From the IMG/VR virus record IMGVR_UViG_3300032770_000001, positions 372,001 through 436,000 of that record: DNA of 64,000 bases. One strand, given 5' to 3'. Below, piece after piece: positions 14,232 to 45,391 of this stretch. How positions within the stretch are numbered: the stretch's first letter is position 1; every line of letters starts with the position of its first letter. The notes below the pieces were generated by a model. The model made no database searches. It was not told the origin of the DNA and saw nothing but the letters and a program-made list of their open reading frames with translations. A program made the position numbers and the translations under genes.

Positions 14232-17200
14232 TTATTCCTTGGTGCCGCAGACGAACTTGTACTTCGCGATCATGCTGTCCGTATCGATATTCTCAATGCG
14301 AACGAACACTTCATACACGAAGCCGCCGCCGTCTCCCTCATGCCAGACTGCTGCCTGTGCGAACGCGGTATTGATGGCGTCCTGCACTTCGCTATCTGTC
14401 AGCTTGTCGAGCAGATACTTCACGCGACTCTGGGTGTTGACCAAGTTGAAGCTGGACAGACCTTGCGGCTGCTCGATGTTGGCAAGCTGGATTTCACCAG
14501 TGCCCGGAACCTTGTCTAGGATCGGACGGTTGGTGACTTTGAATGCCGCCACGAACGTCGCTGCGATCTCACCGCAGACTTTCTGGAGGAAGAGAGCAAA
14601 TTGTTTTGCCTCATCAGCACCAGCGATCTTACCTGCGATTGCTTTCAGCGCCGGGCCGCCCGTGTAGTTGGCGTGATACTCTTCCATGAACATCTGTCCA
14701 GCCCCACGGTTGTTGACCTTGCTGTGACCATCGGCTGCCGGATCGGTAGCCTTCTTCGAGGCAATCGAATTGATCGCCTTGCCGGGAACCGTGCTCTGGT
14801 TCATGAAGAACTCATCATAGAACATCGGCCCGCGAATTTCATCTTCCTTGCGGAACGGTGCGCCTTCGAGAACCTGCGGCTTGCCGTCGCGACCGATGCC
14901 CATAGCACCAGCCGGATCAGTTGAAACATACGCCACGATGGTTGGATCGAGGCTGGCTTCGACCGCCGCTTCGATTGCCTGCTCGGACGGAAGTTCATGC
15001 GCATCGCCGGAGATGTCCGGGTAGAGCATTGGTGAATTGGTCGCGTTTGGATAGTCCACGATCTCGTGCTGGAGATCGGGATAGAACTCTTTCACGACCT
15101 GACCGGGGAAGAACAGGTTAAAGCCTGCTTCCTTCTCGATATCCTCCGGCGACTTGGCTGCGCCTTCGCCAGCCTTCTTGCCTTCAGTTTCGGTGTGCGG
15201 CTTCTCCTGCCATTCCTTGCAGTTCGTTCCCTTCTCGTGCATGTTCCAGTGACCCTGCGTCTTGCAGTAGCCGACCGTCTTACCGTTGGTGTCCTTGGCG
15301 GAAGTTTTGAGTGGGGAGCCCTCATACTTCGCCGGATCGATACCATATTCGGCAAGAATCGAACGAGACGTAGCTTTATCCGGCCCGCCCATCACGCCGA
15401 CCATCGCATCGGGCATCTGAAGCGTCTTGATGGCAATCTTCAACTGGTGCCACTCTGGTGAGCCCTTAGCGGGCATCGGCTTTGCTGCTGTTTTGAGTGA
15501 ATTCATTTTGATCCCCATATCTTTCAACATCTTGTCATCAGCCTTGCTGGTCTGCGGATACGCATCCGGATTCTGGAGGCGCTCTTCATCCATAGCCGAC
15601 GTTGCAATCTCTTCCCAATCCAAATCGCCCAGTTCTTCTTCCCACGAACTGGTGCCGCCGATGTCATAGAAGAGACCTTTGAACTGGTCGCCGTAGTATT
15701 TCACTTTCTGCTCACGGCTCATGCTCTGAAGCTGTTCCTGCGTCGGTTTCGGAGCCCCGCCTTCCAACTGCTCACGCTCATACTGACCACGTTCGCTACG
15801 GGCATCCTCAGCGTTTGCAGCGGCGAAATCGCGGGTCTCTTTCTCCTGTTTCTTAAAGAAACGGGCAAACTGGTTGCCCAGTTCCGCAGGTGTCATGCCC
15901 TTCTTCAAAGCATTGCGAGTCAGATTGATCTTCGTGTTGTACGAGGCTTCCGTGTTGTCAATCAACAGAGCCACGTGCCACGTCAACCAATTCGACCAAC
16001 CGTTGTAATCTGCCTTCTTACAGAGGGCGATTTTGCTACCGAACTTGGCTTTCGCTTTCTTCTCGAAATCCGCCGCCGCCTTCTTGGTCGAAAAGTGCGC
16101 GATGCGAACCTTGCCTTGCAGGGTGAAAGCGATGTGAGCCGATCCACGCTTGAAGGTGAAGACTGTATCCTTGCCGTCATCCTTACCTTCCACTTCACTG
16201 TAGATGTTGATGCCGCGCTCCTGAAACCACTGCGCTGCCTCAGCCGTCGTATTCACGTGTCCGGCTTCTTCAACCGTTCCCATCTCATCGCGAATTACGC
16301 AAGTCAATGGGCGAGTCGGTGAGACTTCGCTGTGCTTCTCGAAGTTCGGTGGGTGACCATTCAGGTCTACGCCGCCGAACGGCCCTCCTGCTGGTTGCAG
16401 GGTATTTTTGTCGCCATGTTCTCCCCCAATCGGTGCGGTGTCGATGTGGCGAGTGTCATTCGGATTCTCGGCATCAGTCGCCCCATGCTTATGGGACTCC
16501 ATGTTCTTCAAGCCTTCTTTGGCCGCGCCTTCAGACTTGAAGGATTCCAGAATCTTATCGGTGTCGTGCTGCTTGATGCACCATTCCGCCAATTCACCCT
16601 TTGAATTGCGGTGACCGGGGCACTTGCTCACATACGCCACTTTGTTCTTAGCGGTGACGTTGATGTTGATCGTCACGCCCTTACCTGCCGGGATCGAGAC
16701 GGACGAGCCGCCTGCTTCCGCTTTATCCTTGGCAGCTTCAACCTCTTCCTGCTTCTGATCGATGGGTTTGCCAATCTCCATCTCAGCCTGACCTTCGATG
16801 GCATCCTTGATCGCCGTTACATTTGGACGTTCAGTGTGCTTGATGTCACCGTCAGTGACCGGAACACCTGCCTCTTCGTGTGTGTTCTCGGTGAACTCCT
16901 GTTTCTCCTGCACACCACCGGGTTGGTCGGCGATCTGCTCTTGCTTCTGAGCGATGTTGTCCATCACGGCTTCCATCTTCTCACCCAGATCGTTATCGCT
17001 CTGGATGATGGCGGCTGCCGATTTCTTAGCGCCCTGTTTCGGCTGATTCTTCATGTCCTCGAACAATTCCTCTTCGCTCGCATACTGCTTGGCGTCTGGA
17101 GGAACGAGGAATACGTCGTAGGTCTTGTGACGAGTTTCCACGATGAACACCTGCTGACCTTCCGGCGTCAAATACAGCAGATGATCCGGACTGTAAGCAT

Positions 17201-17387
17201 ACGGGCTGGGAATTTCTGGAATGCGCTTAATGCGCTTGCCCGTATCCTGCAAGGTATCCATGTAGCGGCTCAAGCCAACGTGTGACGTGATGCGCTTGAT
17301 GCGCTTCGCCGGGAGTTCGCCTTCAGCTTTCTTCTCGTACTCCCCGACCTTTGCGTATTCTTTCAGAGCTTCGATGTTAATTGGCAT
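14232..17387 (-). CDS. Large acidic multi-module protein (putative internal head polyprotein)
   Basis: Modules separated by KKA/KVA/KTA/KEA; includes a YNGWSNWLTW module. Confidence 0.7.
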   Translation of the reverse strand: MPINIEALKEYAKVGEYEKKAEGELPAKRIKRITSHVGLSRYMDTLQDTGKRIKRIPEIPSPYAYSPDHLLYLTPEGQQVFIVETRHKTYDVFLVPPDAKQYASEEELFEDMKNQPKQGAKKSAAAIIQSDNDLGEKMEAVMDNIAQKQEQIADQPGGVQEKQEFTENTHEEAGVPVTDGDIKHTERPNVTAIKDAIEGQAEMEIGKPIDQKQEEVEAAKDKAEAGGSSVSIPAGKGVTININVTAKNKVAYVSKCPGHRNSKGELAEWCIKQHDTDKILESFKSEGAAKEGLKNMESHKHGATDAENPNDTRHIDTAPIGGEHGDKNTLQPAGGPFGGVDLNGHPPNFEKHSEVSPTRPLTCVIRDEMGTVEEAGHVNTTAEAAQWFQERGINIYSEVEGKDDGKDTVFTFKRGSAHIAFTLQGKVRIAHFSTKKAAADFEKKAKAKFGSKIALCKKADYNGWSNWLTWHVALLIDNTEASYNTKINLTRNALKKGMTPAELGNQFARFFKKQEKETRDFAAANAEDARSERGQYEREQLEGGAPKPTQEQLQSMSREQKVKYYGDQFKGLFYDIGGTSSWEEELGDLDWEEIATSAMDEERLQNPDAYPQTSKADDKMLKDMGIKMNSLKTAAKPMPAKGSPEWHQLKIAIKTLQMPDAMVGVMGGPDKATSRSILAEYGIDPAKYEGSPLKTSAKDTNGKTVGYCKTQGHWNMHEKGTNCKEWQEKPHTETEGKKAGEGAAKSPEDIEKEAGFNLFFPGQVVKEFYPDLQHEIVDYPNATNSPMLYPDISGDAHELPSEQAIEAAVEASLDPTIVAYVSTDPAGAMGIGRDGKPQVLEGAPFRKEDEIRGPMFYDEFFMNQSTVPGKAINSIASKKATDPAADGHSKVNNRGAGQMFMEEYHANYTGGPALKAIAGKIAGADEAKQFALFLQKVCGEIAATFVAAFKVTNRPILDKVPGTGEIQLANIEQPQGLSSFNLVNTQSRVKYLLDKLTDSEVQDAINTAFAQAAVWHEGDGGGFVYEVFVRIENIDTDSMIAKYKFVCGTKE

Positions 17388-20300
17388 CGCCTTCCGTTTC
17401 CTTCTCCACTACGAAATCTGCAAGATCACCAATCCCAAGATCGATTGGACGTTCTTCATCCTCTTCGTCACCGTAAGCAGCACAGCCTTGCTTTTCAGCC
17501 AGAGTCCACGTGCTTGCGAGTTCCAACTGATTCACAAGTTCATCAGTGCTGGTGCCGGAATCAACCAGTTCACCATCCGCGTAAATTTCCCAGCCGTTGG
17601 GAGACGTATGGACAACCACGCGATTACCAGTTTCCGGACCCATGAACGTACCGGGATCGCCTTCATCAGACCAACCCATGCCGCTCAGGGCTTCAACATA
17701 CGGGAACTCCCCAGTTTCAGTCTGCGGAGCCGCTTTGACTGATGCCGCGAAATGAGCCGGGTTGACAGTGTCGGTTGAGGCCGAATCACTCGTCAAGTCC
17801 TTCTTGTCCGCGTCCACAGCTTTGCGTGCCTGAGCGAGGTCACCATCGATTGCTTCCGCCGTCTTAGACTTCTCGACGTTGGTTTTCGGAACCATCGGAT
17901 CAGCCCCACCTTTTTCATTGGATGGGTTATCGACCGTGTCCGCGACCTTCGCCGCTTCCGGAACCGACTTAGTTGGCTGCGAGATGTCCTTGTCAACCGT
18001 GTCCGGGCTGACCGTCTTGGACTTCGCTTCGGAGATGTCGCCGCTCACGTCGTCGGCAGTCTTCGCCTTCTCGTGGTCGGTCTTCACTTCCATTGCACCT
18101 GCCCCACCCGCTTCGTTTGCCGGATTGTCGGCGGTGTCAGCCTGCTTTGCATTGTACTGTTCGTGACGCTGCACGGTCGGGGACAAGTTATCGCCCTCGC
18201 CTGCACCGCCGTCACCGGAGTCTGACCCCTCAGAAACTTCGTTGTCAGCCACGTCCGCTGTTTTCTCGCTGCCCATCATCGGTTTGGTCATGTGATGAAG
18301 GGACAGATCACGCACGTCAGACTGGTCAATCGGCTTCTCGCCCGTGGTGTATCCGGACGGCCAACGGTTGTAATCATCGCGGCAGTCACCGTAGAAGTCA
18401 GGCGGGTGTGTCCCACCGCAGCTTCCACAATCGACCCAGTCATCCGGTGGATTTTCGGCATCAATTGGCGGCGGATTCGTCGCGCTGTAAGGCGCACCTG
18501 CCGTCTTTTCCTCGGAGGCGAAGTAGTTCATCTCTTCGTCGCCAAGCTCCGGCTCTTCATCTTCTGCGTAGGTGAACACGCCAGACGCCATAGCGTCTTC
18601 AGCGCAACCGTCGCAGAACGCGGTTCCAGTCACGTCATCCATGTCAACACGACGGAGAATACAGCTTGCTGGAACAAGGCACTGTGCTACGCCTTCGTGC
18701 TGTGGGCAGCCGGGATCGGTGCATTCACAGTCGCCTTCGACTTGGTAAAACCCGTCCGGAGCAGCCGTCTTTTCCTCGGATGCCATCAGGGTATCCATCT
18801 CATCGAGTGAGGATTCGATATCGAAATCGTTCTCACGCGGGTCGCGGTGAGTGTAGACCTCAGCCGTCAACGGGCTGTCAGCCGGAGTCCACGATGTGCG
18901 GCACTTACCGCATTCCCATTCGAAGCTGGATGCAGCACCGATGTGGTAAATGCGATCTTCTTCGGGCAGATCGGTACCGAACGGTTCAGAGCAATTGTCG
19001 CAGTAGTTCACGTCGTCCCACGAATAGGCGGACACGGCACCGCACTTCGGACACTCTTCAGCCGAACCGTCAGCCAGCAGCGATTCCTTAAGGCCCTGAG
19101 CATCAACTTCATAACCTTCGGAATCGACCGCAGCTTGCTTAGATTCAGCGTCGTCACTCTTCTCTTCGGAGCCGGACTCTTCCTTTTTCTCGGACTTGCC
19201 CTTCTCGCGATTCTTCGACCATTCGGACTTGGCACCACCGCCGCCCTTGTCTTCGTCTTCCTTGGTCTTCTCATTTTCGAAGTCAGATTCCTGATTCCCA
19301 GCTTCCGAGTCAGAGACCGACTTGTCGTCTTCCGGGGTATCGGATTCCCACGGCTTCTCCCACTCAGGCTTTTCGCTGCCTTCGGGAGCATCTTCACCGG
19401 GGAGAGGAACAACCGGAGCCGGACCGAACTCTTCCATGTTGTCGAAGATGTCGTCCTCGGTCATCGGGATGTCGGCGAACTTGGCACGCTGAGAGCCGTA
19501 CTTGCGCTGCATCTCTTCTTCGCGCTTCTGTGCCGCCGTCTTGGATTTCTGCGAACGCGCATCGTAAGACTCGCGGGTTGGGCCGCCAGCAATCAAACCC
19601 GCGACGATTTCAGACGCCGCGCTTTTCTTGATCGAAGCGAACTTGCCGCCCTGCTTGTTGTAGTGCTCGTATTCGGAGTGGATCAGGTTGTCGTCGCCGA
19701 CATACAGATCATCCTCACCGAACGACTTGGCGACTTCAGTGAGCTTGTCACCCAAACCGCCCCCATCCAACGCCTGACGATCCCAGAATCCTGCACCGTG
19801 ACCGTTGCGGGTCAGCCAGAAATCGTGTCCAGCTTGCTCTTCTGACGACCACTCACCGTGTCCGTCGTAGCCGGGACGCTGGTAAGCCTCGTTGAGCAGG
19901 GCTTCAGCTTTCTGTTGGAACGCCTGACAATCCTGAGACATCTTGTTGAGCGTCTCTGGAGCGATGTCGCGGATATCGTAATTGCGATCCAAAGGCTCAC
20001 CGCCACTCGGATCGGAGTTGTCATTCGAAGACCACAGGGCGGCTGTAACATAAGCCGTCGTGAAGTCATCAAGCTGCTGAGCAAGCTTCTTCATAGAGCC
20101 AGCCCACCATGCTGCTTTCTTCGACTTCTGTTTCTTGAGCGAAGATGACATCGACATCGGATTCGGCCCCCACTTGCCAGCGTCGATCTCAGCCTGATGA
20201 TCGAACGTTGCGTGATGTGCCTGATTGTCCTGACTCATGCTGGCAGCGTATTCCATCATGTGGTCTTTGTGTTTTTCGAGACCCTTCTTGTCGCCAACAC

Positions 20301-21813: not shown

Positions 21814-21824
21814 GTCTATTCCCC

Positions 21825-22475
21825 TTACTTAGTCTGTGCGATATCACGCCGCACTTGATCTTCTTCAGTCTTCCAGAGTTCACGCCACGCCATCAAGAAG
21901 TTGCTGATGGTGTGGTCACTGACCTGAACCGAGTGCAGAGCACGTTTGTTCATTTCAATGATGTAGTGCATGAGCTTCGCGAATTTCACGCCTTCAAAGT
22001 TGATGTTGTCAACTTTGGCATCGTTCGCTTCGAGAAGCTGCTTACCTAACTCGCGTGCGCCCTTGAGTTGTTCCAAGGACGTTTTCATTCCCTCTTTGTC
22101 GTTAGAGCCGGATACCTTCAGTTCCTCAATGTAGCGGAGCAATGAAGCCATCTCCAGTGCAATCGTTTTGGAAATCTCTTCGTTGGTTGCGGACGGATCG
22201 GCAATCAACTTCTCGATCTCCTGAATTTTCGACACACGTGTCGGCTTTTTCTTGTCTGCCTCGCTCTGACCTTCGACCGCAGCATCGGCAGCCTTTAGCA
22301 GCCCTGCGGCATCGACCTTCGCCGGGGCCGGGGTTTCCGGTGCTACCGGGAGGTTGCCTACCGCTGTGCTCGCTAAACGTTCAGCGACGGTTGTAGTTTC
22401 GGTTGCTGTTGATGTCACTTCTGCACCCTCTTCCTTAAAATCAACGCTCATACGTTGGGATGTTGACTCGTGCAT
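21825..22475 (-). CDS. Hypothetical helical protein
   Basis: TAATG-coupled to the upstream gene. Confidence 0.7.
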   Translation of the reverse strand: MHESTSQRMSVDFKEEGAEVTSTATETTTVAERLASTAVGNLPVAPETPAPAKVDAAGLLKAADAAVEGQSEADKKKPTRVSKIQEIEKLIADPSATNEEISKTIALEMASLLRYIEELKVSGSNDKEGMKTSLEQLKGARELGKQLLEANDAKVDNINFEGVKFAKLMHYIIEMNKRALHSVQVSDHTISNFLMAWRELWKTEEDQVRRDIAQTK

Positions 22476-24421
22476 TAAAAGTCTCCCAACTTCGATGAGT
22501 TCGGCATCTGCACATCGCCGAAATCACCGCTGTATTCGATGTCCGCCATCTTGGTGTCGCCCGGACGACCGCTGCTCGCAGTCAGTTCGAACTCAGCGAG
22601 AATTGAACGTCCATCTTCCGGCACCGATCCGGTCTTGTGACCTTCAGATACCGTAGCGACCTTCTTGGTGCTGCCCTGCTTGTCCATACCGGGGAACGTT
22701 AACAACGTCCCACCAGTCAGACCGCAATGCATACCCTGACGGTACACGCATGTGCCGCACTTCGCAGCGCCCACAATCGGGTTGTGCACGGCGAGCTTGT
22801 TCTTGAGGAACGTGCAATCAATCTGCGACAACGCAACCTTGATCGGCTTATTCTTCAGGCTGGCAATGAAATCCTTCACTGCCTTGCTCGCCTTGGCAGA
22901 CCCGACTTTGGCTGCCGCTGACTTGTAAATCTTCTCCAGTGAGTGACCCTTCTTGTGGTAGTGCTCGATCACGCTGGCATCGATTTCCGGACTTGCAGCC
23001 AGACGCTCACGGCGCAACTGATCCGGGTTGGACTCGACGTAGTTCTGTGGAACGCGAGACAACGGGCTGGCTTTCATTGATTTCTCAAAGCCAGCAGTTT
23101 TCTCGATCTTCTTGCAGCACGCACATTTGGCAGCCCCAACCAGATTCATGGCGTGAACGCCACGCTCTTTCAGGAACTTCACATCGGCGGCAGCGAGAAC
23201 AACCTGCCCGTTCACATTCGGACGCAGAGTCGCGACAAAACCAGACAACGCTTTGGCTGCCGGGTAGGTGCCGAACTTCTTCTCAGCGGCGGCTGTGATC
23301 GCTTTCAAGCTGTGACCCTTCTGGTGCAACTTCGCAACATGCGAAGAGTCCCACGAAAGCGGAGCCACGCGGTTAGCACGCTTCGCCTGCGCATCGACGT
23401 GACCGACGACTGGAGCCGAAATGCCGGATGACGCCGTCTTCGGGCTCTTCGGCATAACCGGAGATTTGGTGCCATCGTTTCCATTGGCGATGTTCACCAA
23501 AGCAGCACGCTTCATCTTTTCCGGCACACCCGCCGTCAGCTTGTTGACAATCGGAGTCAGTTCCTTGGTGTTTGCCACGATGGGAAGCTTGTACAGACCG
23601 CAAGTCTTCTGGGAACCGTTCTTCTGGAAGAACTGGCAACCCTGACATGCACTGATTTGCTTCACCGACGCCGCCTTCGGCTTAATGCCTGCGGCTTTCC
23701 ACTGCTTTGCTTGGCGCAGGCAGTCGTTCGAATCCGAACCCTGCTTCTTGCGCTCATAGGTCGGCGAATTCTTGTCCATGTAAGTATTGGGCTCAAGATA
23801 CGCCATACCGAGCAGTCCCGCGTTGTCCTGCAAGTAGCGGGTGCCGATCTGGTGATTCATCAATTCCAATTCAGCCAGCTTGCGAGCGATCTTCGCCGGG
23901 GACACACCCTGATTGAGCAGATCGTGAATGTATTTCTTGACTTCGGCATCCGAGATGGCTTTCTTCTCGGCGCTGTTCTCAGCAAGATTGTTGTCCTTGC
24001 CAGCCTGTTCGAGACTCTGAGTCACTTCGGCGAACAGAGATTCGTCATCACCAAAACTGTTCTTGTAGTCCTGAGGGCTGCTGGCTTCGTGGTTGCGCCA
24101 GTTCTCAGCCGAGCCGCCGACGCCGGAGAATGCCTGATCCTTGTGCGCCATGCGATCAAGATGTGTCGAGCGGGCCTCAGCGAGGCGCTGCTTCTTCAAA
24201 TCATTGAGGTTCGAGCTTTTGCCAGTCGGCCAGACCGGAGTGTGGCGGGAGGCGGACTCGGCGATGTCGTCCGTAAAATCCTCGTCCACGTACTGGTGCG
24301 TGCGGTCAAGCTGCTCTTCGCCAGATTCCTTAGCTTCGTCGAGACCGAGGTCCTTCCAAGCGGGTTCGCGATCTTCCAAAAGCTGGTCGATGAGCGGGGT
24401 GTACTTTTCTTTATCTGCCAT
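22475..24421 (-). CDS. Putative head-associated protein with internal repeats and Cys clusters
   Basis: Repeat KLHQKGHSLKAI / HYHKKGHSLEKI; VGAAKC twice; K-x-A motifs. Confidence 0.65.
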   Translation of the reverse strand: MADKEKYTPLIDQLLEDREPAWKDLGLDEAKESGEEQLDRTHQYVDEDFTDDIAESASRHTPVWPTGKSSNLNDLKKQRLAEARSTHLDRMAHKDQAFSGVGGSAENWRNHEASSPQDYKNSFGDDESLFAEVTQSLEQAGKDNNLAENSAEKKAISDAEVKKYIHDLLNQGVSPAKIARKLAELELMNHQIGTRYLQDNAGLLGMAYLEPNTYMDKNSPTYERKKQGSDSNDCLRQAKQWKAAGIKPKAASVKQISACQGCQFFQKNGSQKTCGLYKLPIVANTKELTPIVNKLTAGVPEKMKRAALVNIANGNDGTKSPVMPKSPKTASSGISAPVVGHVDAQAKRANRVAPLSWDSSHVAKLHQKGHSLKAITAAAEKKFGTYPAAKALSGFVATLRPNVNGQVVLAAADVKFLKERGVHAMNLVGAAKCACCKKIEKTAGFEKSMKASPLSRVPQNYVESNPDQLRRERLAASPEIDASVIEHYHKKGHSLEKIYKSAAAKVGSAKASKAVKDFIASLKNKPIKVALSQIDCTFLKNKLAVHNPIVGAAKCGTCVYRQGMHCGLTGGTLLTFPGMDKQGSTKKVATVSEGHKTGSVPEDGRSILAEFELTASSGRPGDTKMADIEYSGDFGDVQMPNSSKLGDF

Positions 24422-31248: not shown

Positions 31249-31751
31249 CCCAACTCAGCCAGAATCGCCTTACCCTTCTTGGTGCTCGGATTGACGATGC
31301 ACTTGGTCAGGCCATCGACGATTTTCCACGTCTCAGTCGGGGTCAACATGATCGCCTTGAACTCGCGACCCTCGCGATGCGCACGCACCGCCCGGTGGTT
31401 GCCGTCGATCAGGATCGCGGACATCTTCGGACCGCCATCCGGCTTCGCCCATAACACGGTCGCCAGAATGCCGGGGCGCTCCGGGTCTTGCAGGTGCGCC
31501 AGATGCGGCTCGTTGATATAGACCATGCTCATGTGGTGCGACTTCTTGCCGCAGGAGCACTGCGAGATCACGACGCCGCAGTTCAGGCACTTCTCCTCTT
31601 CCAGAGGCAGCCCGATACCCTCCAAGAAAGCCTTCGGCACCGTGCGCAACGGGCGCTCCGGCGTCACCAGCTTGTTGGCGGCGGCGACATCAAACTCCAA
31701 TGCCAGCATCCGAAACCGTTCGTTCTCGTAATTTCCGCAGTTATCGCACAT
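31236..31751 (-). CDS. ParB/Srx-like domain protein
   Basis: RPGILA...ILIDGNHRAVRA. Confidence 0.6.
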   Translation of the reverse strand: MCDNCGNYENERFRMLALEFDVAAANKLVTPERPLRTVPKAFLEGIGLPLEEEKCLNCGVVISQCSCGKKSHHMSMVYINEPHLAHLQDPERPGILATVLWAKPDGGPKMSAILIDGNHRAVRAHREGREFKAIMLTPTETWKIVDGLTKCIVNPSTKKGKAILAELGWAE

Positions 31752-31763
31752 AAGTCGTCTCCG

Positions 31764-33242
31764 TTAGAACCGTGGCGGCATGTACTCGTTACGACGCTGC
31801 CGCATTTCGCAAATCAAGGCATCCGCCAGAATCCATTCCTCGCGTTCCTTCTGCTCAGCCGCACGCTGCGCCTTACGCGCCTTGGCAGCGGCTTTCTTTT
31901 CTTCCTTGGTCTGGTAAGCCTTGGCGCGGCTGATGGTGGTCTGCTTCACGGCTTCCCTCTGCTCACCCGTGCGCTGATCGGTTCCGGCGTATTCCTCATG
32001 CTTCTTCACAGTCGCCGTCAGGCTAACCACGTCGCCGACGTTGATGTCCTGCTCAGTCGCCGGGTTGTAGTACACGTTCGAGGAGAACCACACGATCACG
32101 TTGCCAGCCGCATCCTTGAACTTGTACAGGTGCGATACGCCCCAATCGCTCTCAAGATCGCGGGTGAACACCAGCGTCAGGTTCAGGAAGTCGCTACGCT
32201 TACCAACTTCGCCGACGTACTGACTGTTCTTGTCCGACTCGAACTGCTTGCGGCGGTTGATCTCGCGTTCCATCTCACGCATGTAAGTCGGGATCGCGGA
32301 GCAAGCGATGCCGAAATTCTTGCTGGTGAACGTCGCACCCTTGCCGAGAACCGACAGGTTGTACATGTAGTCGTTCAGGTTCTCGCGTTCCGACAGGGAC
32401 GCCAGCCACTCGGCAACTTCGTGCGCCGTCGCCTTGTCCTCATCGGTCGGCTTCAACGGCTTTTCCCACTGCTTGCGCTCGTGCGCCCGTGCGAAAACCC
32501 AATTGGAAACTTCGTTGGAAGTCGAGAGCGTACCGTACTCACGGGCCGTCTTGTTCGAGCGCCAACCATTCAGGCGAATCTGGCACGCGGCGAGGGCAAG
32601 AATCTCTTCCGCCATGAACCGCTCGACGTAGCGTCCACCCGCCCCACCGAAGAAGTCGTCATCTTCGGAGCCCATGCACAAATCTTCGGCGGACATCAGG
32701 TACTCGGCGTAACGGCAGAAAACCTCAGGCGATGTGTGACCCAAAAAATCGCGGAGGCAGTTGCGACCGACCTGCTTGTAGGTATCGTCCTCGTGACGCA
32801 GGACGAAGGTCTCGTTGCGGCGGCGGATCGTATTGCAATGATCGCAGTGATTTTCAGCGGAGCGATAGGCAACCGGAACTTCGTGCGAGGCTCCGGGGAC
32901 GTTGCGCAGCATGTTGCCGAGGCTCTTGCCTTCCTCGTCGGTGACAGGCTGGATGACGGCGATGAATTCCCAACCGTTCAGCTTGGGGGCTTCGCCGGAG
33001 ACGGTGATGTCGAACACCTTGCGGAAGCAGCGAATCTTGTTGGTCGGGAACCCGGTGTATTCATCGTTCTCGTAAACCGGGACTTCCTTGGAGCCGAGGA
33101 CGTTGATGATGATCGTGCCGCAATTCAGCTTCGCAGCACGCTTGTTCAGCTTGGCGATCTGCTCTTCCAGCTTGGGAAGGTTGAATTCAGGAACTTCGAA
33201 GATTTTCGGCTCGGCGGCGACGTTGTTCATAACCTGTTCCAT
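31764..33242 (-). CDS. Early protein with Zn ribbon and C-terminal OB-fold
   Basis: CDHCNTIRRR..QVGRNC; YVGEVGKR...FKDAAGNVIVWFSS...LTATVKKH...KQTTISR. Confidence 0.7.
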   Translation of the reverse strand: MEQVMNNVAAEPKIFEVPEFNLPKLEEQIAKLNKRAAKLNCGTIIINVLGSKEVPVYENDEYTGFPTNKIRCFRKVFDITVSGEAPKLNGWEFIAVIQPVTDEEGKSLGNMLRNVPGASHEVPVAYRSAENHCDHCNTIRRRNETFVLRHEDDTYKQVGRNCLRDFLGHTSPEVFCRYAEYLMSAEDLCMGSEDDDFFGGAGGRYVERFMAEEILALAACQIRLNGWRSNKTAREYGTLSTSNEVSNWVFARAHERKQWEKPLKPTDEDKATAHEVAEWLASLSERENLNDYMYNLSVLGKGATFTSKNFGIACSAIPTYMREMEREINRRKQFESDKNSQYVGEVGKRSDFLNLTLVFTRDLESDWGVSHLYKFKDAAGNVIVWFSSNVYYNPATEQDINVGDVVSLTATVKKHEEYAGTDQRTGEQREAVKQTTISRAKAYQTKEEKKAAAKARKAQRAAEQKEREEWILADALICEMRQRRNEYMPPRF

Positions 33243-33285
33243 GCCTATATTCTACCAGTGGAAGGCGCGAAAAAGGTAGTATTTT
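33243..33285 (-). promoter_or_regulatory. Early-type leaderless promoter
   Basis: AAAATACTACC-N17-TGGTAGAATATAGGC-ATG. Confidence 0.75.
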
Positions 33286-33300
33286 ATGGCTATATTTGCC

Positions 33301-33732
33301 CTATTTTGAGGCACTTACGGATAGTTTTAGCTGATGACCCACGTGCCAGCCCTCACAAAACGGGCAGTGGTAGACATCGTAGGGGACGCCCTCCCGATCC
33401 TGCACGGCGCGTCGGTGCGACTCGGCGAACGACTGGAACTTATGCCGCTGCTTGCCCCGGCACATGCGTGACCACTGGTCGTAGTTCTCGGCAGTGATGA
33501 ACCGGGGACGCTTCACCCGCGTACAGGCTCCGGCGTGCGGCAGGCGCTCCAGCTTGGCGTTGTAGTAGTACGGGCCGAAGTTGTTTGTAGGACGGCTCCC
33601 GGTGGTGTCTTTGCCAACCCTGCGCAGGACGCCGCAGACACAACGGGAAACGTAGATGAGACCGCCGTGGTTGTTGTCCCATACGCCGGGGTTCTCTTTC
33701 ATGCCGCCATGGGGCTTGAATTCGTGGTTCAT
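33301..33732 (-). CDS. Hypothetical protein with C-terminal YxCPFCxGWH finger
   Basis: Likely start MNHEF; CRGK...YHCPFCEGWHVGH. Confidence 0.55.
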   Translation of the reverse strand: MNHEFKPHGGMKENPGVWDNNHGGLIYVSRCVCGVLRRVGKDTTGSRPTNNFGPYYYNAKLERLPHAGACTRVKRPRFITAENYDQWSRMCRGKQRHKFQSFAESHRRAVQDREGVPYDVYHCPFCEGWHVGHQLKLSVSASK

Positions 33733-39146: not shown

Positions 39147-39186
39147 AGAGGTATATTTGTATTATAATCAACAGTTTGGGGATGAA

Positions 39187-39281: not shown

Positions 39282-39308
39282 CAGTTCCTCGTACACGTGG
39301 TACGTGAA

Positions 39309-39539
39309 TTACGCGACTGGATCAGTCGGTGCGCGGCGAGCGCCTTGACGCTTCGGACGCGGACCGCCTTTGCCGAGAACGTAGTTGACAAAGGTGTTGA
39401 TGTCGAAACGCGGATTCTCCGCACTCAACGGTTGTGCAATGCGACGTGCAAATTGTTCCATCTGCTCAGGCGAGAGACCCGATTCCTTGATCGCATCTGC
39501 GATCATGATGTAGTCCTTACGGCTCAGGGCAACTTTGCT
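39309..39539 (-). CDS. RKDY..IA / NPRFD module, probably reached by +1 frameshift from 39538..40302
   Basis: Open frame reads SKVALSRKDYIMIADAIK...AENPRFDINTF and starts in the +1 frame at CTT TAG C. Confidence 0.6.
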   Translation of the reverse strand, partial: SKVALSRKDYIMIADAIKESGLSPEQMEQFARRIAQPLSAENPRFDINTFVNYVLGKGGPRPKRQGARRAPTDPVA

Positions 39540-40302
39540 AAAGACTCCCGGAGGCTGATTTCGCGCCTGCGGGGGTAACCTTTGCAGAAGATTTGTTCAC
39601 TTCACTAACACCCTCAGCACGCGGAATTTCGAGCTTACTCGGAGCCTTCGGTTGTCCGGCTGCGTCACGATCAGTGACGTATGCGTCGGAGCCAACGGCG
39701 GCTTCTTTTTCTTCAGGTTTCTCTTCCTTGTCTTCGGATTCGGACTTGTCCTCGGACTCGGATTTTTCTTCCTTCCCCTTCTCGAACGAGGGCTTTTCGT
39801 CAATCGGAGATTCCTGCGACTCTTCGCCCTTTTCCTCACCAAGCTCAAGCTCAGCCTTGCCTTCGTCAGTGAATGCTTGTTCGGCTGGGGTTGCGCCCAG
39901 ATCGACACCGAGAACCTCGGCTGCCATCTCGATAGCGGCTGCCTGCTCATCCAGTGCCTTGTAGGACTGACGGAGGGCGTCTGCCAGCATGTCCGGCTTT
40001 TCGTCGGCAGTCTGACGGAATCCCTTGGCGTAGTTACGGGCGGCGGCGACACGAACCTTTGCCGGAGCATCGGCGGCGGCACGGACGAGACCGAGATTGG
40101 TCTGGAGACCTTCCATCCAGTCAGCCTGACGTGCGGACTTCTCTACCAGAGAAGCCAGAATCTTCTCAAATTTCTGCGGGTTCTTGGCAGCGGCACGCAT
40201 CTTCTCGTACTTCGCCGCCTCTTCCGCTTTACGGGCTTCCTTACGGGCTACGATAGCCTCACGGAGCGCCTTGCGGTCGATTGCTTTCTTTTCCTTTGCC
40301 AT
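39538..40302 (-). CDS. Putative head-associated protein (K/E/A-rich, K-x-A motifs)
   Basis: GGAGG RBS and own late-type promoter motif. Confidence 0.75.
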   Translation of the reverse strand: MAKEKKAIDRKALREAIVARKEARKAEEAAKYEKMRAAAKNPQKFEKILASLVEKSARQADWMEGLQTNLGLVRAAADAPAKVRVAAARNYAKGFRQTADEKPDMLADALRQSYKALDEQAAAIEMAAEVLGVDLGATPAEQAFTDEGKAELELGEEKGEESQESPIDEKPSFEKGKEEKSESEDKSESEDKEEKPEEKEAAVGSDAYVTDRDAAGQPKAPSKLEIPRAEGVSEVNKSSAKVTPAGAKSASGSL

Positions 40303-40342
40303 GTTTCCTCCACCCTATTAAAGGGGTCAAAAAGTTCAGTTG

Positions 40343-43300
40343 TTAGGCGACTTTCAGCCCGTCGCCCTGAATACCTGCAACAATATCTTGAATATAGCGG
40401 TGCTCGACAACCACAGAGTCGCCCCAGTATGTTACCCCGCTTTCAGGGTTAGGCTCGCCGCTGCTGTAGCTTGAGTCGAGGTTTTCGATGATCCAGTCCT
40501 CAGCCGCCGCCGTCATTGGGGTCAACAGGAAGATGCCGCCCTCGTTGCGAACTTCAAAATCCGGCCCCTCGTAGGGAGCACCTTGTGGGGTGTACTGCGG
40601 CTTATCCGCCTTTTTCTTACGACCACGTGCGCCGGGGTGACCGCTTGACTTCTTGCTGCTGGTCAGCGGAAGTGCCTGCTGATTCGGATCGGGAGCAGGT
40701 GCTTCCGGTTGCTCTTCCTCGTACAGGTTGCCGCCGTACTGCATGAAAACCTCGTGCCCCTGCTTGAGTTCCTCGACCATATCTTCGATCTGGTAACGCT
40801 CGTGCCAGTACAGATTGCCGTTCGGATCAGCGAAGATTTCACCGGAGGTCAGAGCCCCGATGTCGGCGGGATTGACATTCTCCCAGCCGTTGGTGAAGAA
40901 GTCTTCCATGAGTTCCCAGATGCTCTGGTACGTCTGCGCATCTTGCGGTCCACCCTGAGCAACTTCCTGAAGCAACTGTGCAGTCGGCTTCAGTTTGATG
41001 CCGCCCTTACCGTAGAGGACATCGACGTAGGTGCCTTTGTCTTCGCCCTTGGTCGGCGTGCGTGCTTCCTGCGCATCCACTTTGTTCTGCTCGTCCTGCT
41101 GTTTCAACTCATCAAGCGTCACAGCCGTTTTCTTTGATGCGACAGCGGAGTTCGGAACGTAACCGACTTCCGGCTGTTTTGGCTTCAGACCGAGTTGGTC
41201 TGGAGTCTTCGGATTGCCACGCTGCTTCATGTTGAGAATTGCTGGATTTGCCGCTTCCTTGTCAGATGCGATCACTTCACCTTCCTCGTCATCATCATCG
41301 AACGGGACGTAGCCATCATAATCGGAACGCTCCGGATAGAATGCTGCCCATTCCGCCAATGCTTCAGCGTTGCCGCGACCGGATTCCTTGAAGCGAGCGA
41401 TCATCTCGTTCAGATACTCATAGCCATGCGTGGTCAGCGGGTTCTTTAGGAACTCACCGCAGCCTGCGCAGTTCTGCGGACTGTCGGACTCTTGATCGAA
41501 GAACGGACCTTTCGGATAGTTGTCGGAGTCATAGCTTGACTCGTCTTCCGGGTTCTCCGGGCCTTCGCCGTTCGCGTCGATTCTCTGCGCGATTTTTATA
41601 GCGCAGTCTTCGCACCACACGTCAGCGGCGTAGATGTATTCACCGTCGTTAGAACCACGGATACCACTGTCGGCACCGGGCTCGAATGCTTCTTTTTCCA
41701 TTGTGCCCTCTTTCACTTGCTCGTTCTTAAATGTCACGAAACGGTGACGCCCACCGTGCAGAGAAGTTCCGCAGCAATCGCAAGGACGTTTCGAAAACTC
41801 ATCGATGCCTTCGCCCGTCTCGCTGTCGAAGTCAGGAACCAGCCAACCCAATCTCTGGATGCCTGCCTGAATCTGCTCCATGCGCTTGTTAGCCTCTTCG
41901 CCCTGATAGTAATAATCAAGGCCGGAGTAGTCATCGTTCACTGCCGCTTGCAGACAGTCGTCGCACAACCACAAATTGTCCTGCTCAATTTCAGCGGCAG
42001 TTTTGTTTGCCTGAATGCCCATGTCTTTCAACATCTGCTTCTCTTCGTCCGTGGGGTTGTATTCCTTCTCGTGCCCGTGGAACTCTTCGATACCCGCAGG
42101 CTCTTCCAATTCTACGTCACCGGGGGTGATGTAGTCCGCGAGGCTCTGCAACTCAGCCAGTTCCGCATAGCTAATGCGCTCGGCACGAAGTTGGCTACGG
42201 AGATATTCCAGACGCTCCTGAATTTCCTCTGGCTCCAACTCGTCCTCGTCCTCATCAATCCATGCCTTCTTGCTCGATGCTTCCTTGGAGCAAGTGCCGC
42301 AGTACCACTTGTTGCCGATCTCGTGGCTGCCTTCGTCTACGTCAGATGAATCGAACACCTTACCGCAGCCAGCACATTCAACTTCGCGTGAAGAGGTCTT
42401 GTCGCTGCTTTCGACCGCATCCAGTCCCTCATCCACATGACGATCCATGCAGGATTCGTCGCCAGACTCAATCTCTTCGAGGTCGAGACCTTCGATGCTT
42501 TGCCCACCCTCGGCATCGACCACCGACCAAATCGCACCACACGGTCCGCACGTAACCCACCACTGTCCGTGCTCGAACGCAGGCACGCAACCTTCGTGAA
42601 TCTCAGTGAGAGGGTGAGACGCGATTAGACGCTCTACTTCCATCTCCATTTCCGGAGTGTTCTGCTCCGTTTTCAACGCTGCTTTCTTCATGGTGCCCTC
42701 TTCTGACGACATGTGGAATTTCTTGTTGGGAAGCTCCGGTGGGACGGTCTTCCGCTTCAGCCCTTCGTTTTCTTTCTCCTGTGGCAGCACAGCCATCGGT
42801 GCCCCCGGCTGTCCGGGGATCGGCTGCACTACCGGATTTGGTTCCGCTGTGGGTGCTTGCGGTTGCGCTGCTGGTGCCTGAACCGGAGCCGGAGCCGCCG
42901 CCACAGTCATGGAAACAACCTTCTCACCCGGCTTGAGCTTCTTGGTAACGGCTTTCTCCGCTCCCTGATAATCGTTGCCGCCTACGGTTTCTTCACGCTG
43001 ATTGCCTTTGGTGTCACGCAGGGTGACCTTCCACTTGGCTTCCTTCAACATCTTGATACCGTGATTGCGATTGACACTGTGCTCATTCGCGGTGTCTTCA
43101 GTCGTGCCCCATACCGGACAATTGCGGCACTGCCACATCTTCTCCGGAACGGTGACGCCCTTGAGAGCGTCCGGGTTGCGAGCTAACAACTTGTCCAAAC
43201 GTCCAGCCGTCTTGCTTGCACCCTTCATTTTCTTATAAGCTTCGAATTTCTGATCCTGCGGTACACCCGGCATGTGTTCTCCACCACCACGACAAGGGCG

Positions 43301-45391
43301 TAAATTGCAGGTTACACATTCCAGACAACGAGGGCAATACAGATGCGTGCGCTCTTGCTCATCATAGTCCGGTTCCTCAGGCATGTCGGCAGGCAAGAGG
43401 TTCTCCGCAAATTCTGCGGTCTTTGACGCTTGCTTGAGCTTCGAATAACGTTCCCGCATCTGTGCTAATGTCTTTTCGTCGAAACGGATGATGTCGGCAT
43501 TGCGCTTCAGACCCTCTTCAGAGCCAAATCCGCCAGTCACCAACTTCTCCTCATCGTTCACGAAATGGTAGGAACCGTCGTTGAGCTTCTCAACTTTCCA
43601 CTTGGGGTCATCGAGTTTGATGCCAACGGTCTTCGGCCCGGCGGGTTTCTTGCCGCCATGAATGTATTGCTCGTAATAAGCATCGTGCTCTTCAGCACTG
43701 ATTTTGCCAGCATAGCGCAATGCGTCAATCACGCCAGCGATGTAGTTGTAGGCGTTTGAATTCTTTGCTGAGTCATCCCAGATTTTCGTCAGGAAGGTGC
43801 CGACATCCAAACCACGGAGGCTATCCTTCAACTCGGCGACTTTAACTGCTCCGGCATGATAACTGCCTTGCGTGCGTCCATGCGGTGGACGCCCGGTGTC
43901 GCCTTCAGTGATCTGTGGCTGAATGCCATCATAGAATTGATCGCCGCCCTCAGCGCCGTCTTTCTTCTTAGGTTCGGTCTTCTTCATCAACTCCACGGTT
44001 TTGTCGAAGTTTTCGCTGTAGACCGGGCAATCGATGCGGTGCCGTCCATGATAGCCGCCGCAGCACTTTGAAGTGTCAATCGTCGGAACCGAAGTATCGG
44101 CAGCTTCTTTGCAAATGCAATTTTCCTTCACCCGGTCACACGCATCACAGTACGGCACACCAGCAGGCGGGTGAATATCCCGCTCAGTCTGAACCGCAGC
44201 CGCTTTCGGATCATTGATGCCGGGGACGATACCGTGTTCCCAATTCTTGCCACAGTCATTGCACTTGGCAGTCTCGAAGTCGGTCGGCATGAGCCCGTAG
44301 TCTGAGGAGCCGCAGTGTGGGCACTTCGGTTTAGCCGATGCCGTGGCGTGTACTTTCGCCTGCGGTTCTTTCATCTGAGTGATGAGATTGATAAGTTGGT
44401 ATCCAGTCTCTTCGCCACGAGGCAACTGTCCTTCGGTCGCAAACTCTTCAAGTAGACCGGGCAGTTCCGAGTAGTAACGCTTCAATGAGTCCTGACCGAG
44501 GTTGGTGACTTTCAGCCAGTCCTGTACCAGATCGCTCACCGTAATCTTGGCTTCCCCAGTGCTCTCCTGTGCGTGCTTCCAGAACAGTAAGAGAACGATC
44601 ATGTTGTACTTGGCAGCCGTGCGGGATACCTTGGTTGGGAGCCATGCGGCGAATCGCTTCGCTACGTTCTTGAATTCCTGCTCGGATTCAAACTCAGTGT
44701 GCGGCGATGGAGCATTCAACTGCTGACTGTCGATCAAACTATAAGTTTCGTCCTCCTCGTGCTTGCCGCCAGCAGGCTGCTCGCCGGAGACTTCCTCCGG
44801 ATGCTGCACCTGACGGATATAGCTCTTGGCACGCTCGATGCGGAAGGTAAACTGCTTCTTCAGGAATTCCGTAATCTGTTCGGCCACTGGGAGCTTCTTG
44901 ACGCCAGCGGGAAAGTTCTTGATGGCTCGCGGAAAGTCCTGCATCGCCTTGCCGTGCTGGAGCACGTAAAGGATGACGTGATAGATCGCCTCATCCTTCA
45001 GTTCGAAGTCGAGGGTTGTGGATGTGAGTGAGGGAACGAAGACTGTCTGAAACCACTTCGACCAATCCATCTTGGGATCGACCGGATATCCCGCCTGCTC
45101 AATGTAGGACTTGACGAACTTGTCGAAATCCTTGTTGTAGGCGAAGACGTAGCGGATTCGTGACGCAATACGCGCCTGACCCGGTGAGATCGGGTGGAAA
45201 TTGGCTGGGGTCTGAACAGGCTTCCCGGTGTACGGGTCGGCCAACCTGAAGGCGTAGCCGTCCGGTCCGGCGACTTTAGACACCACCCGGTAGGCGGAAC
45301 CATCGAGAGTATCGACAATTTGCCCCGGCGCGATAAGGCGGGAAAACTTGGTCAGGTTCGCCGCTGGTACTCGTACAGCGTCCTGAGGCAT
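40343..45391 (-). CDS. Very large multi-module protein (putative internal head polyprotein), possibly sigma-like N-terminal module
   Basis: About 15 small modules separated by KTA/KEA/KKA/KVA. Confidence 0.7.
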   Translation of the reverse strand: MPQDAVRVPAANLTKFSRLIAPGQIVDTLDGSAYRVVSKVAGPDGYAFRLADPYTGKPVQTPANFHPISPGQARIASRIRYVFAYNKDFDKFVKSYIEQAGYPVDPKMDWSKWFQTVFVPSLTSTTLDFELKDEAIYHVILYVLQHGKAMQDFPRAIKNFPAGVKKLPVAEQITEFLKKQFTFRIERAKSYIRQVQHPEEVSGEQPAGGKHEEDETYSLIDSQQLNAPSPHTEFESEQEFKNVAKRFAAWLPTKVSRTAAKYNMIVLLLFWKHAQESTGEAKITVSDLVQDWLKVTNLGQDSLKRYYSELPGLLEEFATEGQLPRGEETGYQLINLITQMKEPQAKVHATASAKPKCPHCGSSDYGLMPTDFETAKCNDCGKNWEHGIVPGINDPKAAAVQTERDIHPPAGVPYCDACDRVKENCICKEAADTSVPTIDTSKCCGGYHGRHRIDCPVYSENFDKTVELMKKTEPKKKDGAEGGDQFYDGIQPQITEGDTGRPPHGRTQGSYHAGAVKVAELKDSLRGLDVGTFLTKIWDDSAKNSNAYNYIAGVIDALRYAGKISAEEHDAYYEQYIHGGKKPAGPKTVGIKLDDPKWKVEKLNDGSYHFVNDEEKLVTGGFGSEEGLKRNADIIRFDEKTLAQMRERYSKLKQASKTAEFAENLLPADMPEEPDYDEQERTHLYCPRCLECVTCNLRPCRGGGEHMPGVPQDQKFEAYKKMKGASKTAGRLDKLLARNPDALKGVTVPEKMWQCRNCPVWGTTEDTANEHSVNRNHGIKMLKEAKWKVTLRDTKGNQREETVGGNDYQGAEKAVTKKLKPGEKVVSMTVAAAPAPVQAPAAQPQAPTAEPNPVVQPIPGQPGAPMAVLPQEKENEGLKRKTVPPELPNKKFHMSSEEGTMKKAALKTEQNTPEMEMEVERLIASHPLTEIHEGCVPAFEHGQWWVTCGPCGAIWSVVDAEGGQSIEGLDLEEIESGDESCMDRHVDEGLDAVESSDKTSSREVECAGCGKVFDSSDVDEGSHEIGNKWYCGTCSKEASSKKAWIDEDEDELEPEEIQERLEYLRSQLRAERISYAELAELQSLADYITPGDVELEEPAGIEEFHGHEKEYNPTDEEKQMLKDMGIQANKTAAEIEQDNLWLCDDCLQAAVNDDYSGLDYYYQGEEANKRMEQIQAGIQRLGWLVPDFDSETGEGIDEFSKRPCDCCGTSLHGGRHRFVTFKNEQVKEGTMEKEAFEPGADSGIRGSNDGEYIYAADVWCEDCAIKIAQRIDANGEGPENPEDESSYDSDNYPKGPFFDQESDSPQNCAGCGEFLKNPLTTHGYEYLNEMIARFKESGRGNAEALAEWAAFYPERSDYDGYVPFDDDDEEGEVIASDKEAANPAILNMKQRGNPKTPDQLGLKPKQPEVGYVPNSAVASKKTAVTLDELKQQDEQNKVDAQEARTPTKGEDKGTYVDVLYGKGGIKLKPTAQLLQEVAQGGPQDAQTYQSIWELMEDFFTNGWENVNPADIGALTSGEIFADPNGNLYWHERYQIEDMVEELKQGHEVFMQYGGNLYEEEQPEAPAPDPNQQALPLTSSKKSSGHPGARGRKKKADKPQYTPQGAPYEGPDFEVRNEGGIFLLTPMTAAAEDWIIENLDSSYSSGEPNPESGVTYWGDSVVVEHRYIQDIVAGIQGDGLKVA

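Follow-up and report, generated by a model that had tools for sequence, protein, structure and literature searches.

The 64,000-nucleotide (nt) stretch analysed here, referred to throughout as the window, is part of a 455,708-bp IMG/VR viral contig and carries, amid tail, terminase and head genes, three giant open reading frames (ORFs), A, B and C, whose products are strung together from small modules and repeatedly display the tripeptide Lys-x-Ala (K-x-A), above all in the form K-T-A. Comparison among related phages supports well the view that this motif behaves like the recognition site of a prohead protease, and the giant ORFs may accordingly encode polyproteins that are cut into their modules inside the head. 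An initial annotation had drawn attention to the three ORFs and to a series of K-x-A-bearing strings at their module junctions; the ORFs are confirmed on the minus strand (Table 1), and every one of the quoted strings is present.

The phage, a huge one from soil, is, judging from sequence, a relative of the Tunturiibacter phage Tunturi_5, a cultured 309-kb myovirus with a host among the Acidobacteriota, and distantly of Bacillus phage G. Its major capsid protein (MCP) is 70% identical to that of Tunturi_5, 49% to its counterpart in an uncultured 485-kb phage and 34% to gp27 of phage G, and a near-identity DNA search against known phages matched nothing. Nearly all genes of the window lie on the minus strand, and those rich in K-x-A are found on this structural strand within the late structural block, where A and B adjoin TerL, C adjoins the tail genes, and a further polyprotein of 948 amino acids (aa) adjoins the protease gene. 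The gene order 648-aa protein, 216-aa protein, B/A and TerL represents conserved synteny; relatives of A and B were located through their synteny with TerL, exact-word seeding having given almost none.

Modular proteins of the structural gene block

Table 1. Positions of the features discussed in the text, in window coordinates except for the two L001 entries, which lie on the same contig.
Feature	Position	Strand	Remarks
ORF A, 1051 aa	14232..17387	(-)	Variable module array, then conserved C-terminal domain aa 755-1051
Module A 460-634	15486..16010	(-)	DUF7249/phrog_871-like; starts right after LCKKA, ends at SLKTA
ORF B, 1478 aa	17377..21813	(-)	Conserved N-terminal domain aa 1-290, then ~13 modules split by strong K-x-A sites
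B 1187-1319	17857..18255	(-)	Four tandem acidic units of 28-39 aa, ending KQA, KTA, KVA, KTA
Module B 569-726	19636..20109	(-)	Full copy of a free-standing ~135-aa family, between KLA 576-578 and KFA 724-726
648-aa protein	22475..24421	(-)	K-x-A-rich; syntenic partner upstream of B; ortholog of Tunturi_5 gp348
ORF C, 1682 aa	40343..45391	(-)	Conserved N-domain aa 1-340 and ~10 modules, many CxxC zinc-ribbon-like
Module C 1133-1235	41687..41995	(-)	Weakly phrog_8253-like; between KTA 1130-1132 and KEA 1233-1235
Zn-ribbon module C 351-402	44186..44341	(-)	Mobile cassette, recurs in other polyproteins of related phages
322-aa protein	53573..54541	(-)	SWIM-like CxC...CxH by eye, no Pfam match; Lys/Glu-rich tail; K-T-A at aa 29-31 (nt 54449-54457)
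Major capsid protein	58604..59563	(-)	phrog_2522, E 7e-42; K-T-A at aa 19-21 (nt 59501-59509) closes short N-terminal leader
Scaffold-like protein, 751 aa	61461..63716	(-)	Rich in Ala, Pro and Glu; 6 or more conserved K-x-A sites; encoded between protease and MCP
Prohead protease, C-terminal ~94 aa	63716..64000	(-)	Tail with KAA, KIA, KIA; gene continues past the window
Prohead protease, full, 298 aa	L001:4952-5848		Directly upstream of scaffold-like protein; MCP further downstream
Fourth modular polyprotein, 948 aa	L001:2078-4924		CxxC-rich; just past the right edge of the window, immediately upstream of the protease gene
Large terminase TerL	11452-13557
Tail protein	47015-51601		Discoidin-like F5/8 type C domain
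Metallophosphoesterase, 283 aa	8567-9418		Calcineurin-like; downstream of TerL
669-aa ORF	31488-33497	(+)	Probably a shadow ORF
492-aa ORF	31764-33242	(-)	Matches phrog_2319, E 2.6e-76
HNH endonuclease	54576-54911
NUDIX hydrolase	55913-56419
Endonuclease VII	56764-57201
Galactosyltransferase-like protein	57905-58546
HNH-like ORF	60244-60801	(+)	Resembles HNH by eye, without Pfam match; flanked by scaffold and decoration genes

The giant ORFs had been described as chains of modules of 30-150 aa, and such modules are indeed present, but the terminal domains of A, B and C are larger and conserved. A and B overlap by 11 nt (17377-17387) and are the C-terminal and N-terminal halves, respectively, of one ancestral protein: the N-domain of B and the C-domain of A form the two ends of the single ~1,100-aa ORF gp350 of Tunturi_5, with a variable middle, and likewise of single ORFs in several related contigs, the loci concerned being L127:9040-12282, L116, L118 and L122. 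The C-domain of A is conserved in 14 loci; a profile search of the PDB with this domain was empty, fold comparison returned weak PAS-like resemblances and no significant match, and in its model the last ~130 aa alone fold. A PDB search with the N-domain of B was also without meaningful match. At its C-terminal end ORF C reads ...GLKVA. The relation of A and B as halves, the fourth polyprotein outside the window and the overlap with the concept of polyvalent proteins (PMC5512222) were all missing from the initial annotation. Cutting at the strong K-x-A sites would divide the polyproteins, which are acidic and in places of low complexity, into ~32 segments that include Cys-rich mini-domains and the four acidic units of B, a number with which the "dozens" of mini-proteins first spoken of roughly agree.

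Several modules correspond to free-standing proteins or to cassettes found elsewhere. Module B 569-726 matches phrog_1915 (E 4.5e-34, profile positions 6-138 of 141). Its free-standing homologs number at least 7,958, with lengths of 125-145 aa and identities of 52-64%; aligned to B, they start 1-2 aa after the KLA and stop ~12 aa before the KFA. They lie among small genes without annotation, arrayed on one strand, within regions that resemble prophages. Module A 460-634 matches Pfam PF23907 (E 4.4e-07, with profile position 3 aligned to aa 459) and phrog_871 (E 7e-08), while the match of C 1133-1235 to phrog_8253 has an E of 0.0087 (aa 1138-1216 on profile positions 6-82 of 88). Copies of the Zn-ribbon cassette C 351-402 occur in differing contexts in L085, L086 and L088 at 63-81% identity, and in L087 at 38% over a longer match, and the cassette always ends in DPK[A/T/E]A or SKKA. 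Because the ortholog of the 948-aa protein in L085 and L086 carries this Zn ribbon found here in ORF C, cassettes evidently move from one polyprotein to another. The acidic units of B 1187-1319 are 70-83% identical and are repeated in homologs; the T4 head retains short acidic internal peptides, which these units resemble.

Scans of Pfam, PHROGs and NCBIfam gave no known function for any module. In A, B, C and the 648-aa protein, the same three collections (PADLOC was not searched) revealed no conflict domain such as a MuF/portal fusion, ART, ParB-like, methylase, helicase or lysozyme domain, and Pfam and NCBIfam scans of the 948-aa protein found none either. NCBIfam matched no polyprotein at all, the profile matches obtained being confined to DUF7249 and to PHROG families without known function, and no embedded peptidase family, whether a zincin-like MPTase or similar, was detected in the ORFs. 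A DarB-like antirestriction label carried by Tunturi_5 gp350 was not reproducible: gp350 had no PHROG match at E ≤ 0.1, and the methyltransferase and helicase domains expected of P1 DarB were not found in A or B with Pfam and NCBIfam.

Enrichment and placement of the Lys-x-Ala motif

The counts of K-x-A and K-T-A in each protein were compared with those expected from whole-protein shuffles. B contains 22 K-x-A against 10.2 expected (p<0.001), C 22 against 10.6 (p=0.001), the 648-aa protein 15 against 8.0 (p=0.011) and the 751-aa scaffold-like protein 21 against 11.5 (p=0.001), with K-T-A counts of 8 against 0.6, 4 against 0.5, 2 against 0.4 and 3 against 0.5, respectively. The density of the motif that had been noted is borne out in the scaffold and the 648-aa protein, and the enrichment anticipated over composition-matched shuffles holds for B and C (p ≤ 0.001) but not for A. 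It fails by count in the K/A-rich 254-aa protein (5 against 5.8, with no K-T-A) and in the 322-aa protein (1 against 2.4), although the latter has one conserved N-terminal K-T-A (1 against 0.06). Tail, terminase and enzyme genes, in which the motif had seemed rare, stand at expectation.

Stricter controls, consisting of permuted residue orders and of shuffles within blocks of 10-30 aa, were applied to 36 homologous polyproteins from related contigs (40.8k aa), where K-x-A, above all K-T-A, proved enriched beyond local composition. K-T-A occurs 106 times, whereas the same three residues in any of the five remaining orders occur 8-19 times and the block shuffles predict 18-20 ± 4; K-x-A occurs 616 times against 355 ± 17 expected, and the reverse A-x-K 361 times. 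A pure composition or linker explanation is ruled out by the ordering controls, the local shuffles and the K/A-rich control proteins without excess. At the middle position of the motif T, K, Q, V and E predominate; at the three residues preceding the Lys, Ser is in 2.4-3.5-fold excess; and the Ala is usually followed by A, S, G or D. Because the codons of the motif vary freely, it is kept at the protein level and not at the DNA level, and a conserved DNA linker or recombination site is likewise ruled out.

With respect to module borders, BLAST breakpoints fall within 3 aa of a K-x-A in 25% of cases against 10% expected; since the control motifs K.S and A.K are also raised near these breakpoints, the test speaks for borders rich in K, A and S and for nothing more specific. 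In a second test, 17 large insertions between homolog pairs were examined for K-x-A within 6 aa of an edge, alongside six control motifs. The motif was present at 10 of the 17 left edges and 10 of the 17 right edges (null 2.8 ± 1.5, or ~3.5 times chance) and at both edges of five insertions (null 0.5 ± 0.7), whereas all six control motifs were at null. Junctions without K-x-A also occur. Homology breakpoints in A fall at KVA 249-251, KKA 457-459, KTA 632-634 and KEA 752-754, and all profile matches found lie inside inter-motif segments. L087 and L088, near-identical otherwise, differ by a ~130-aa block inserted exactly after NKTA, and the folded part of the A C-domain begins directly after a K-x-A that is kept in 14 of 14 homologs with a variable middle residue. 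The best explanation is that modules pass from phage to phage, and from one polyprotein to another, as cassettes with the putative cleavage motif at their borders.

Two other features are seen near junctions. A recurring element of ~25 aa, N-P-T-D/E-x-x-x-x-x-L-K/R-x-M/I-G-I-x(3-5)-K-x-A, precedes some of them (A aa 606-634, 15486-15572; C aa 1108-1132, 41996-42070; aa 176-200 of the 948-aa protein; also in L084 and L120) and could be an extended recognition or docking element. At two sites in C, M901 (42689-42691) and M1231 (41699-41701), an internal ATG lies 1-3 residues before K-x-A with a GAGG 6-7 nt upstream, and these could be fossil or still-active starts of once separate genes. Family-wide, a Shine-Dalgarno-like sequence precedes ATGs near K-x-A in 18% of cases against 10%, a weak signal (p=0.02), and Met is not enriched upstream of the motif (0.149 against 0.159).

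Prohead protease, scaffold and head proteins

The prohead protease matches the head maturation protease family phrog_18299 (E 2e-15), and its own family numbers more than 800 members on contigs of up to 894 kb. Residues H105 and S162 do not vary among 38 homologs or across a four-phage alignment that includes gp19 of phage G, and are likely catalytic; the protein also carries an E-x-S-W-V-x-x-P-A block and a Cys-rich CxxC insert. Foldseek searches of BFVD matched gp19 of phage G (9e-11) and entries for prohead serine protease, COG3740 and XkdF, with a probability of ~1.0 but TM values of only 0.3-0.5. The protease itself displays the motif, at aa 5-7 in 37 of the 38 homologs (with F, Y, I, V, T or Q in the middle), at aa 33-35 in 31 of the 38, and again in the C-terminal tail, where the initial annotation had seen it as well. 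The termini that bear K-x-A are low-confidence, flexible ends of the model, and the positions also hold in Tunturi_5, LR745208 and phage G.

A similar pattern is seen in the scaffold-like protein, where aa 346-348 form K-x-A in all 39 orthologs (45-69% identity) with T (12), K (12), V (10) and also S, Q or R at the middle position. Five further columns are kept in 28-37 of the 39 orthologs with a variable middle, among them aa 453-455 (37 of 39), 21-23 (34 of 39) and 341-343 (34 of 39); KTA·DDRKDAGP here, for example, is KKA·DDRKDAGP in Tunturi_5 (the raised dot marks the presumed cut). The MCP site reads KTA here, KSA in Tunturi_5 and KTA in LR745208, and distant MCP alignments begin at aa 21-23; as a single site it is only suggestive of leader cleavage. 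Among 39 distinct orthologs of the 322-aa protein, a leader of ~13-45 aa ends in ...(V/I)KTA·(I/V)(S/T)LP(D/E)(I/L)VRQTN at each N-terminus that was inspected; the length and sequence of this leader vary, while its K-T-A end is invariant in those inspected. A protease gene is thus at hand, and the fixed Lys and Ala about a free middle position in 38 protease, 39 scaffold and 14 A C-domain copies lend comparative support to the interpretation of K-x-A as a prohead protease site.

The motif extends to the cultured relatives. In Tunturi_5, K-x-A is in excess in the scaffold (16 against 5.4 expected), gp348 (18 against 7.3), gp350 (16 against 9.1) and gp328 (19 against 8.9), with KTA·S repeated at the N-terminus of gp348, and is not enriched in the sheath, the fibers, the MCP or the K/A-rich gp335 (5 against 4.0). 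In phage G, gp19 has 8 against 2.4, gp21 has 7 against 2.8, and the MCP none; gp20, which begins MSKKISRLKKTA, belongs to the protease/scaffold region that shares the K-x-A pattern. Phage G also possesses many Zn-ribbon proteins encoded by separate small genes without K-x-A. Tunturi_5 gp321 (L081:433-4521), a protein of 1,362 aa annotated as a NUDIX hydrolase, has PHROG matches to RNA-ligase and acetyltransferase families, sits among tail and neck genes and shows no excess of K-x-A (10 against 9.0); it looks like a classical enzymatic polyvalent protein.

The remaining genes of the window include homing-type and accessory genes scattered among the head genes, namely those for two endonucleases, an HNH-like product on the opposite strand, a NUDIX hydrolase and a galactosyltransferase-like protein. 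The 669-aa ORF overlaps the 492-aa ORF on the other strand (Table 1). The calcineurin-like metallophosphoesterase is the sole enzyme-like protein of the window with an excess of K-x-A (4 against 0.8 expected, p=0.004). There are no tRNA genes within the window.

Interpretation and relation to known systems

The reading that we prefer, at somewhat less than an even chance, is that K-x-A is where the prohead protease cuts and that the polyproteins are head-internal, co-assembled into the prohead and cut into modules there. The enzyme, a prohead serine protease probably of HK97 type, would recognize Lys at P3 and cut on the C-terminal side of the Ala; P2 could vary (T>K>Q>V>E), P1' would be small, and P4-P6 would often include Ser. 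A together with B, C, and the 648-aa and 948-aa proteins would be the head-internal polyproteins; they would enter the prohead core, probably with the scaffold and possibly by way of their conserved end domains, and cleavage at ~30 linker sites would yield short acidic peptides along with small folded modules. Any folded module trapped by the shell would remain with the DNA and pass into the host during ejection, and the outcome would be the delivery of proteins for which other mobile elements use early or accessory genes. We infer cleavage, packaging, retention, ejection and function alike; the presence of A, B and C in the virion is suggested by the position of their genes in the structural block, and it is plausible that the pieces are injected effectors. 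The proteases of T4 (gp21) and of phiKZ and SPN3US recognize three-residue motifs of which the middle position is free, and cleave internal and ejection proteins there (PMC9026906, PMC10052503). With its fixed K and A, its free middle and its location in flexible segments of proteins of the kinds that are cut in T4- and phiKZ-like phages (same sources), K-x-A shows the signature to be expected of P3/P1 recognition. Retention and function are favoured by the folded Zn-ribbon modules and by the complete copies of free-standing proteins that are widespread; disposal is favoured by the short acidic units and by known cases in which propeptides are expelled.

A number of observations weigh against this preferred reading. 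Small products of cleavage mostly leave the head in T4 and phiKZ-like phages, and retention here is an assumption. The excess of K-x-A in A is not significant (15 against 10.3 expected, p=0.07; K-T-A 1 against 0.6), some module borders have no K-x-A, the modules are without assigned function, and no typical conflict domain was detected with Pfam, PHROGs and NCBIfam. The protease had no Pfam match at E ≤ 0.01 and no PDB match by phmmer, profile or Foldseek, and its model is of moderate quality (pLDDT 66.7). The MCP of phage G has ETE where its relatives have K-T/S-A, the particle proteomics paper on phage G (bioRxiv 10.1101/2024.12.16.628780) reports no processing sites, and the Tunturi paper contains no proteomics. 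Neither of these two papers holds processing data for this phage lineage, and no published description of a Lys-x-Ala prohead-protease motif was found in the literature searched.

In a rival explanation the prohead protease does cut at K-x-A but the arrays are disposable, being scaffold-like filler or multi-site propeptides expelled before DNA packaging, so that at most the end domains stay and no cargo is carried. The scaffold has the same dense motif, B 1187-1319 consists of 28-39-aa acidic units without sign of a fold, the polyproteins are acidic and locally of low complexity, and in phiKZ and SPN3US long propeptides with several redundant sites are removed (PMC9026906, PMC10052503). Cys-rich, Zn-ribbon-like segments and full copies of free-standing families at 52-64% identity are nevertheless hard to square with filler, as are cassettes that have been exchanged and kept across phages, and we regard disposable arrays as unlikely, though the most probable of the rivals. 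The next three explanations are each less likely than cleavage by the prohead protease into modules. The polypeptides could be uncut, multi-domain polyvalent virion proteins in which K-x-A is a favoured flexible linker rich in Lys, Ala, Ser and Thr. Mosaic multidomain phage proteins are indeed encoded near virion genes and some, such as the N4 virion RNA polymerase, are packaged unprocessed (PMC5512222); BLAST breakpoints are enriched near K.S and A.K too, and cleavage of the K-x-A proteins is itself a prediction. Generic linkers would not be expected to favour the order K-T-A or to fix K and A about a free middle, the motif is also found in the termini of a single-domain protease, in the scaffold and in short leaders, where no domains are linked, and K/A-rich controls (254-aa protein, Tunturi_5 gp335) lack an excess, all of which makes this explanation decidedly unlikely.

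A non-proteolytic role of K-x-A as a short linear motif, for instance as a prohead-core docking or encapsidation signal or as a site of lysine modification, is improbable. It would account for a site 5-7 residues from the protease N-terminus, an oddly short propeptide, and for the K-V-A at the very end of ORF C, where no cut is needed, and the capsid-targeting sequences of T4 demonstrate that short leaders can be address tags (PMC9026906); since address tag and cleavage site coincide in T4, however, such a role would not exclude cutting, and small P1 and P1' residues, a tolerant P2 and a flexible location are typical of protease sites. Least probable of all, and only barely to be entertained, is the late co-expression of small proteins without packaging, by way of cytoplasmic processing (by the prohead or another protease) or internal starts. 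Against it stand the place of the genes in a structural block, the weakness of the start-codon signal and the lack of a general Met excess upstream of the motif; in its favour, two C junctions (M901 and M1231) keep a GAGG ahead of their ATG, and Shine-Dalgarno-like sequences are raised before such ATGs. Prohead proteases such as T4 gp21 and HK97 gp4 are also normally active only inside assembled proheads, which counts against processing in the cytoplasm.

A broader proposal, doubtful at present but conceivable, is that a clade of huge soil phages, from the relatives of Tunturi_5 out to phage G, has turned part of its early and accessory genes into capsid-delivered K-x-A polyproteins, released by the protease and injected with the DNA, with the motif serving as a recombination-tolerant joint for swapping cassettes among phages and polyproteins. 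Dozens of mini-proteins, which in other mobile elements have small genes of their own, would be loaded into the prohead as such chains, and the protease, of HK97 type, would be a genuine polyprotein-processing enzyme. If true, these readings would reveal, in a large and barely studied group of huge phages, a novel prohead-protease specificity (Lys at P3, Ala at P1), and would make the processing of head proteins predictable from sequence across the group. They would also establish a polyprotein strategy in tailed double-stranded DNA (dsDNA) phages, joining the proteolysis of head maturation to the idea of an injected counter-defence kit, and would suggest that small proteins which are very widespread but lack an assigned role act early in the host, one such family having ~8,000 or more free-standing homologs. 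Both Tunturi_5 and phage G are in culture, and particle proteomics data exist for phage G.

Among known systems, T4 recognizes L/I-x-E, with Glu at P1, whereas here Lys stands at P3 and Ala at P1; the phiKZ-type motif likewise ends in Glu, and that of SPN3US is A-x-E. Much as is proposed for the present phage, the T4 prohead protease cuts the scaffold, the MCP leader, the internal proteins (IPI, IPII, IPIII, Alt) and core proteins at a motif of three residues whose middle position is free; short N-terminal leaders end in the motif, and the cleavage products are ejected with the DNA, IPI blocking restriction (PMC9026906). The internal proteins of T4 are, in contrast, products of separate genes, each with its own leader, and there are no arrays of tens of modules per polypeptide; the T4 protease is moreover of the gp21 family, whereas that found here appears by fold to be of the HK97 gp4/COG3740 type. 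The giant phages phiKZ, 201phi2-1 and SPN3US (gp175, gp268, gp245) offer a similar likeness, in that a three-residue motif marks the cuts made in many proteins of the head and inner body and in ejection proteins, with several redundant sites to a substrate, and the protease also trims itself at the C-terminus (PMC10052503, PMC9026906). They differ in that mostly N-terminal propeptides are removed from large proteins, while the inter-site segments here appear as small folded domains homologous to free-standing proteins, and their lineage is unrelated, the MCP and protease of the present phage being closest to those of phage G.

Polyvalent proteins (Iyer, Burroughs, Anand, de Souza and Aravind 2017, PMC5512222) are similarly mosaics of great length that shuffle cassettes rapidly and have their genes next to those of the virion, the prediction being that they are packaged and injected as a counter to host defences. 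The proteins described here share with them many distinct domains per polypeptide (2-15 or more in polyvalent proteins) with mosaic shuffling and a position among virion and packaging genes. Polyvalent proteins are, however, defined by conflict domains (MuF, ART, ParB-like, methylases, zincin-like peptidase), in place of which mini-domains were detected here, and their processing is proposed to proceed by an embedded peptidase, whereas here the prohead protease would act in trans on a defined motif. The protease shares with the HK97 gp4 type (COG3740/XkdF-like) a gene upstream of scaffold and MCP, an invariant His and Ser ~57 residues apart, the E-x-S-W-V-x-x-P-A block and, tentatively, fold-level matches, and departs from it in its Cys-rich CxxC insert and in a predicted substrate range far beyond the capsid delta domain. 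By analogy only, the polyproteins of eukaryotic RNA viruses, such as those cut by the picornavirus 3C protease, are also single products cleaved by a viral protease at a short repeated motif, but there is no homology, and the cutting proposed here would take place inside the capsid of a tailed dsDNA phage. The present case thus shares the logic of T4 gp21, of phiKZ and SPN3US and of polyvalent proteins, and differs from them in its motif, in the lineage of its protease, in its layout of mini-modules and in having neither a recognised conflict domain nor a recognised embedded peptidase.

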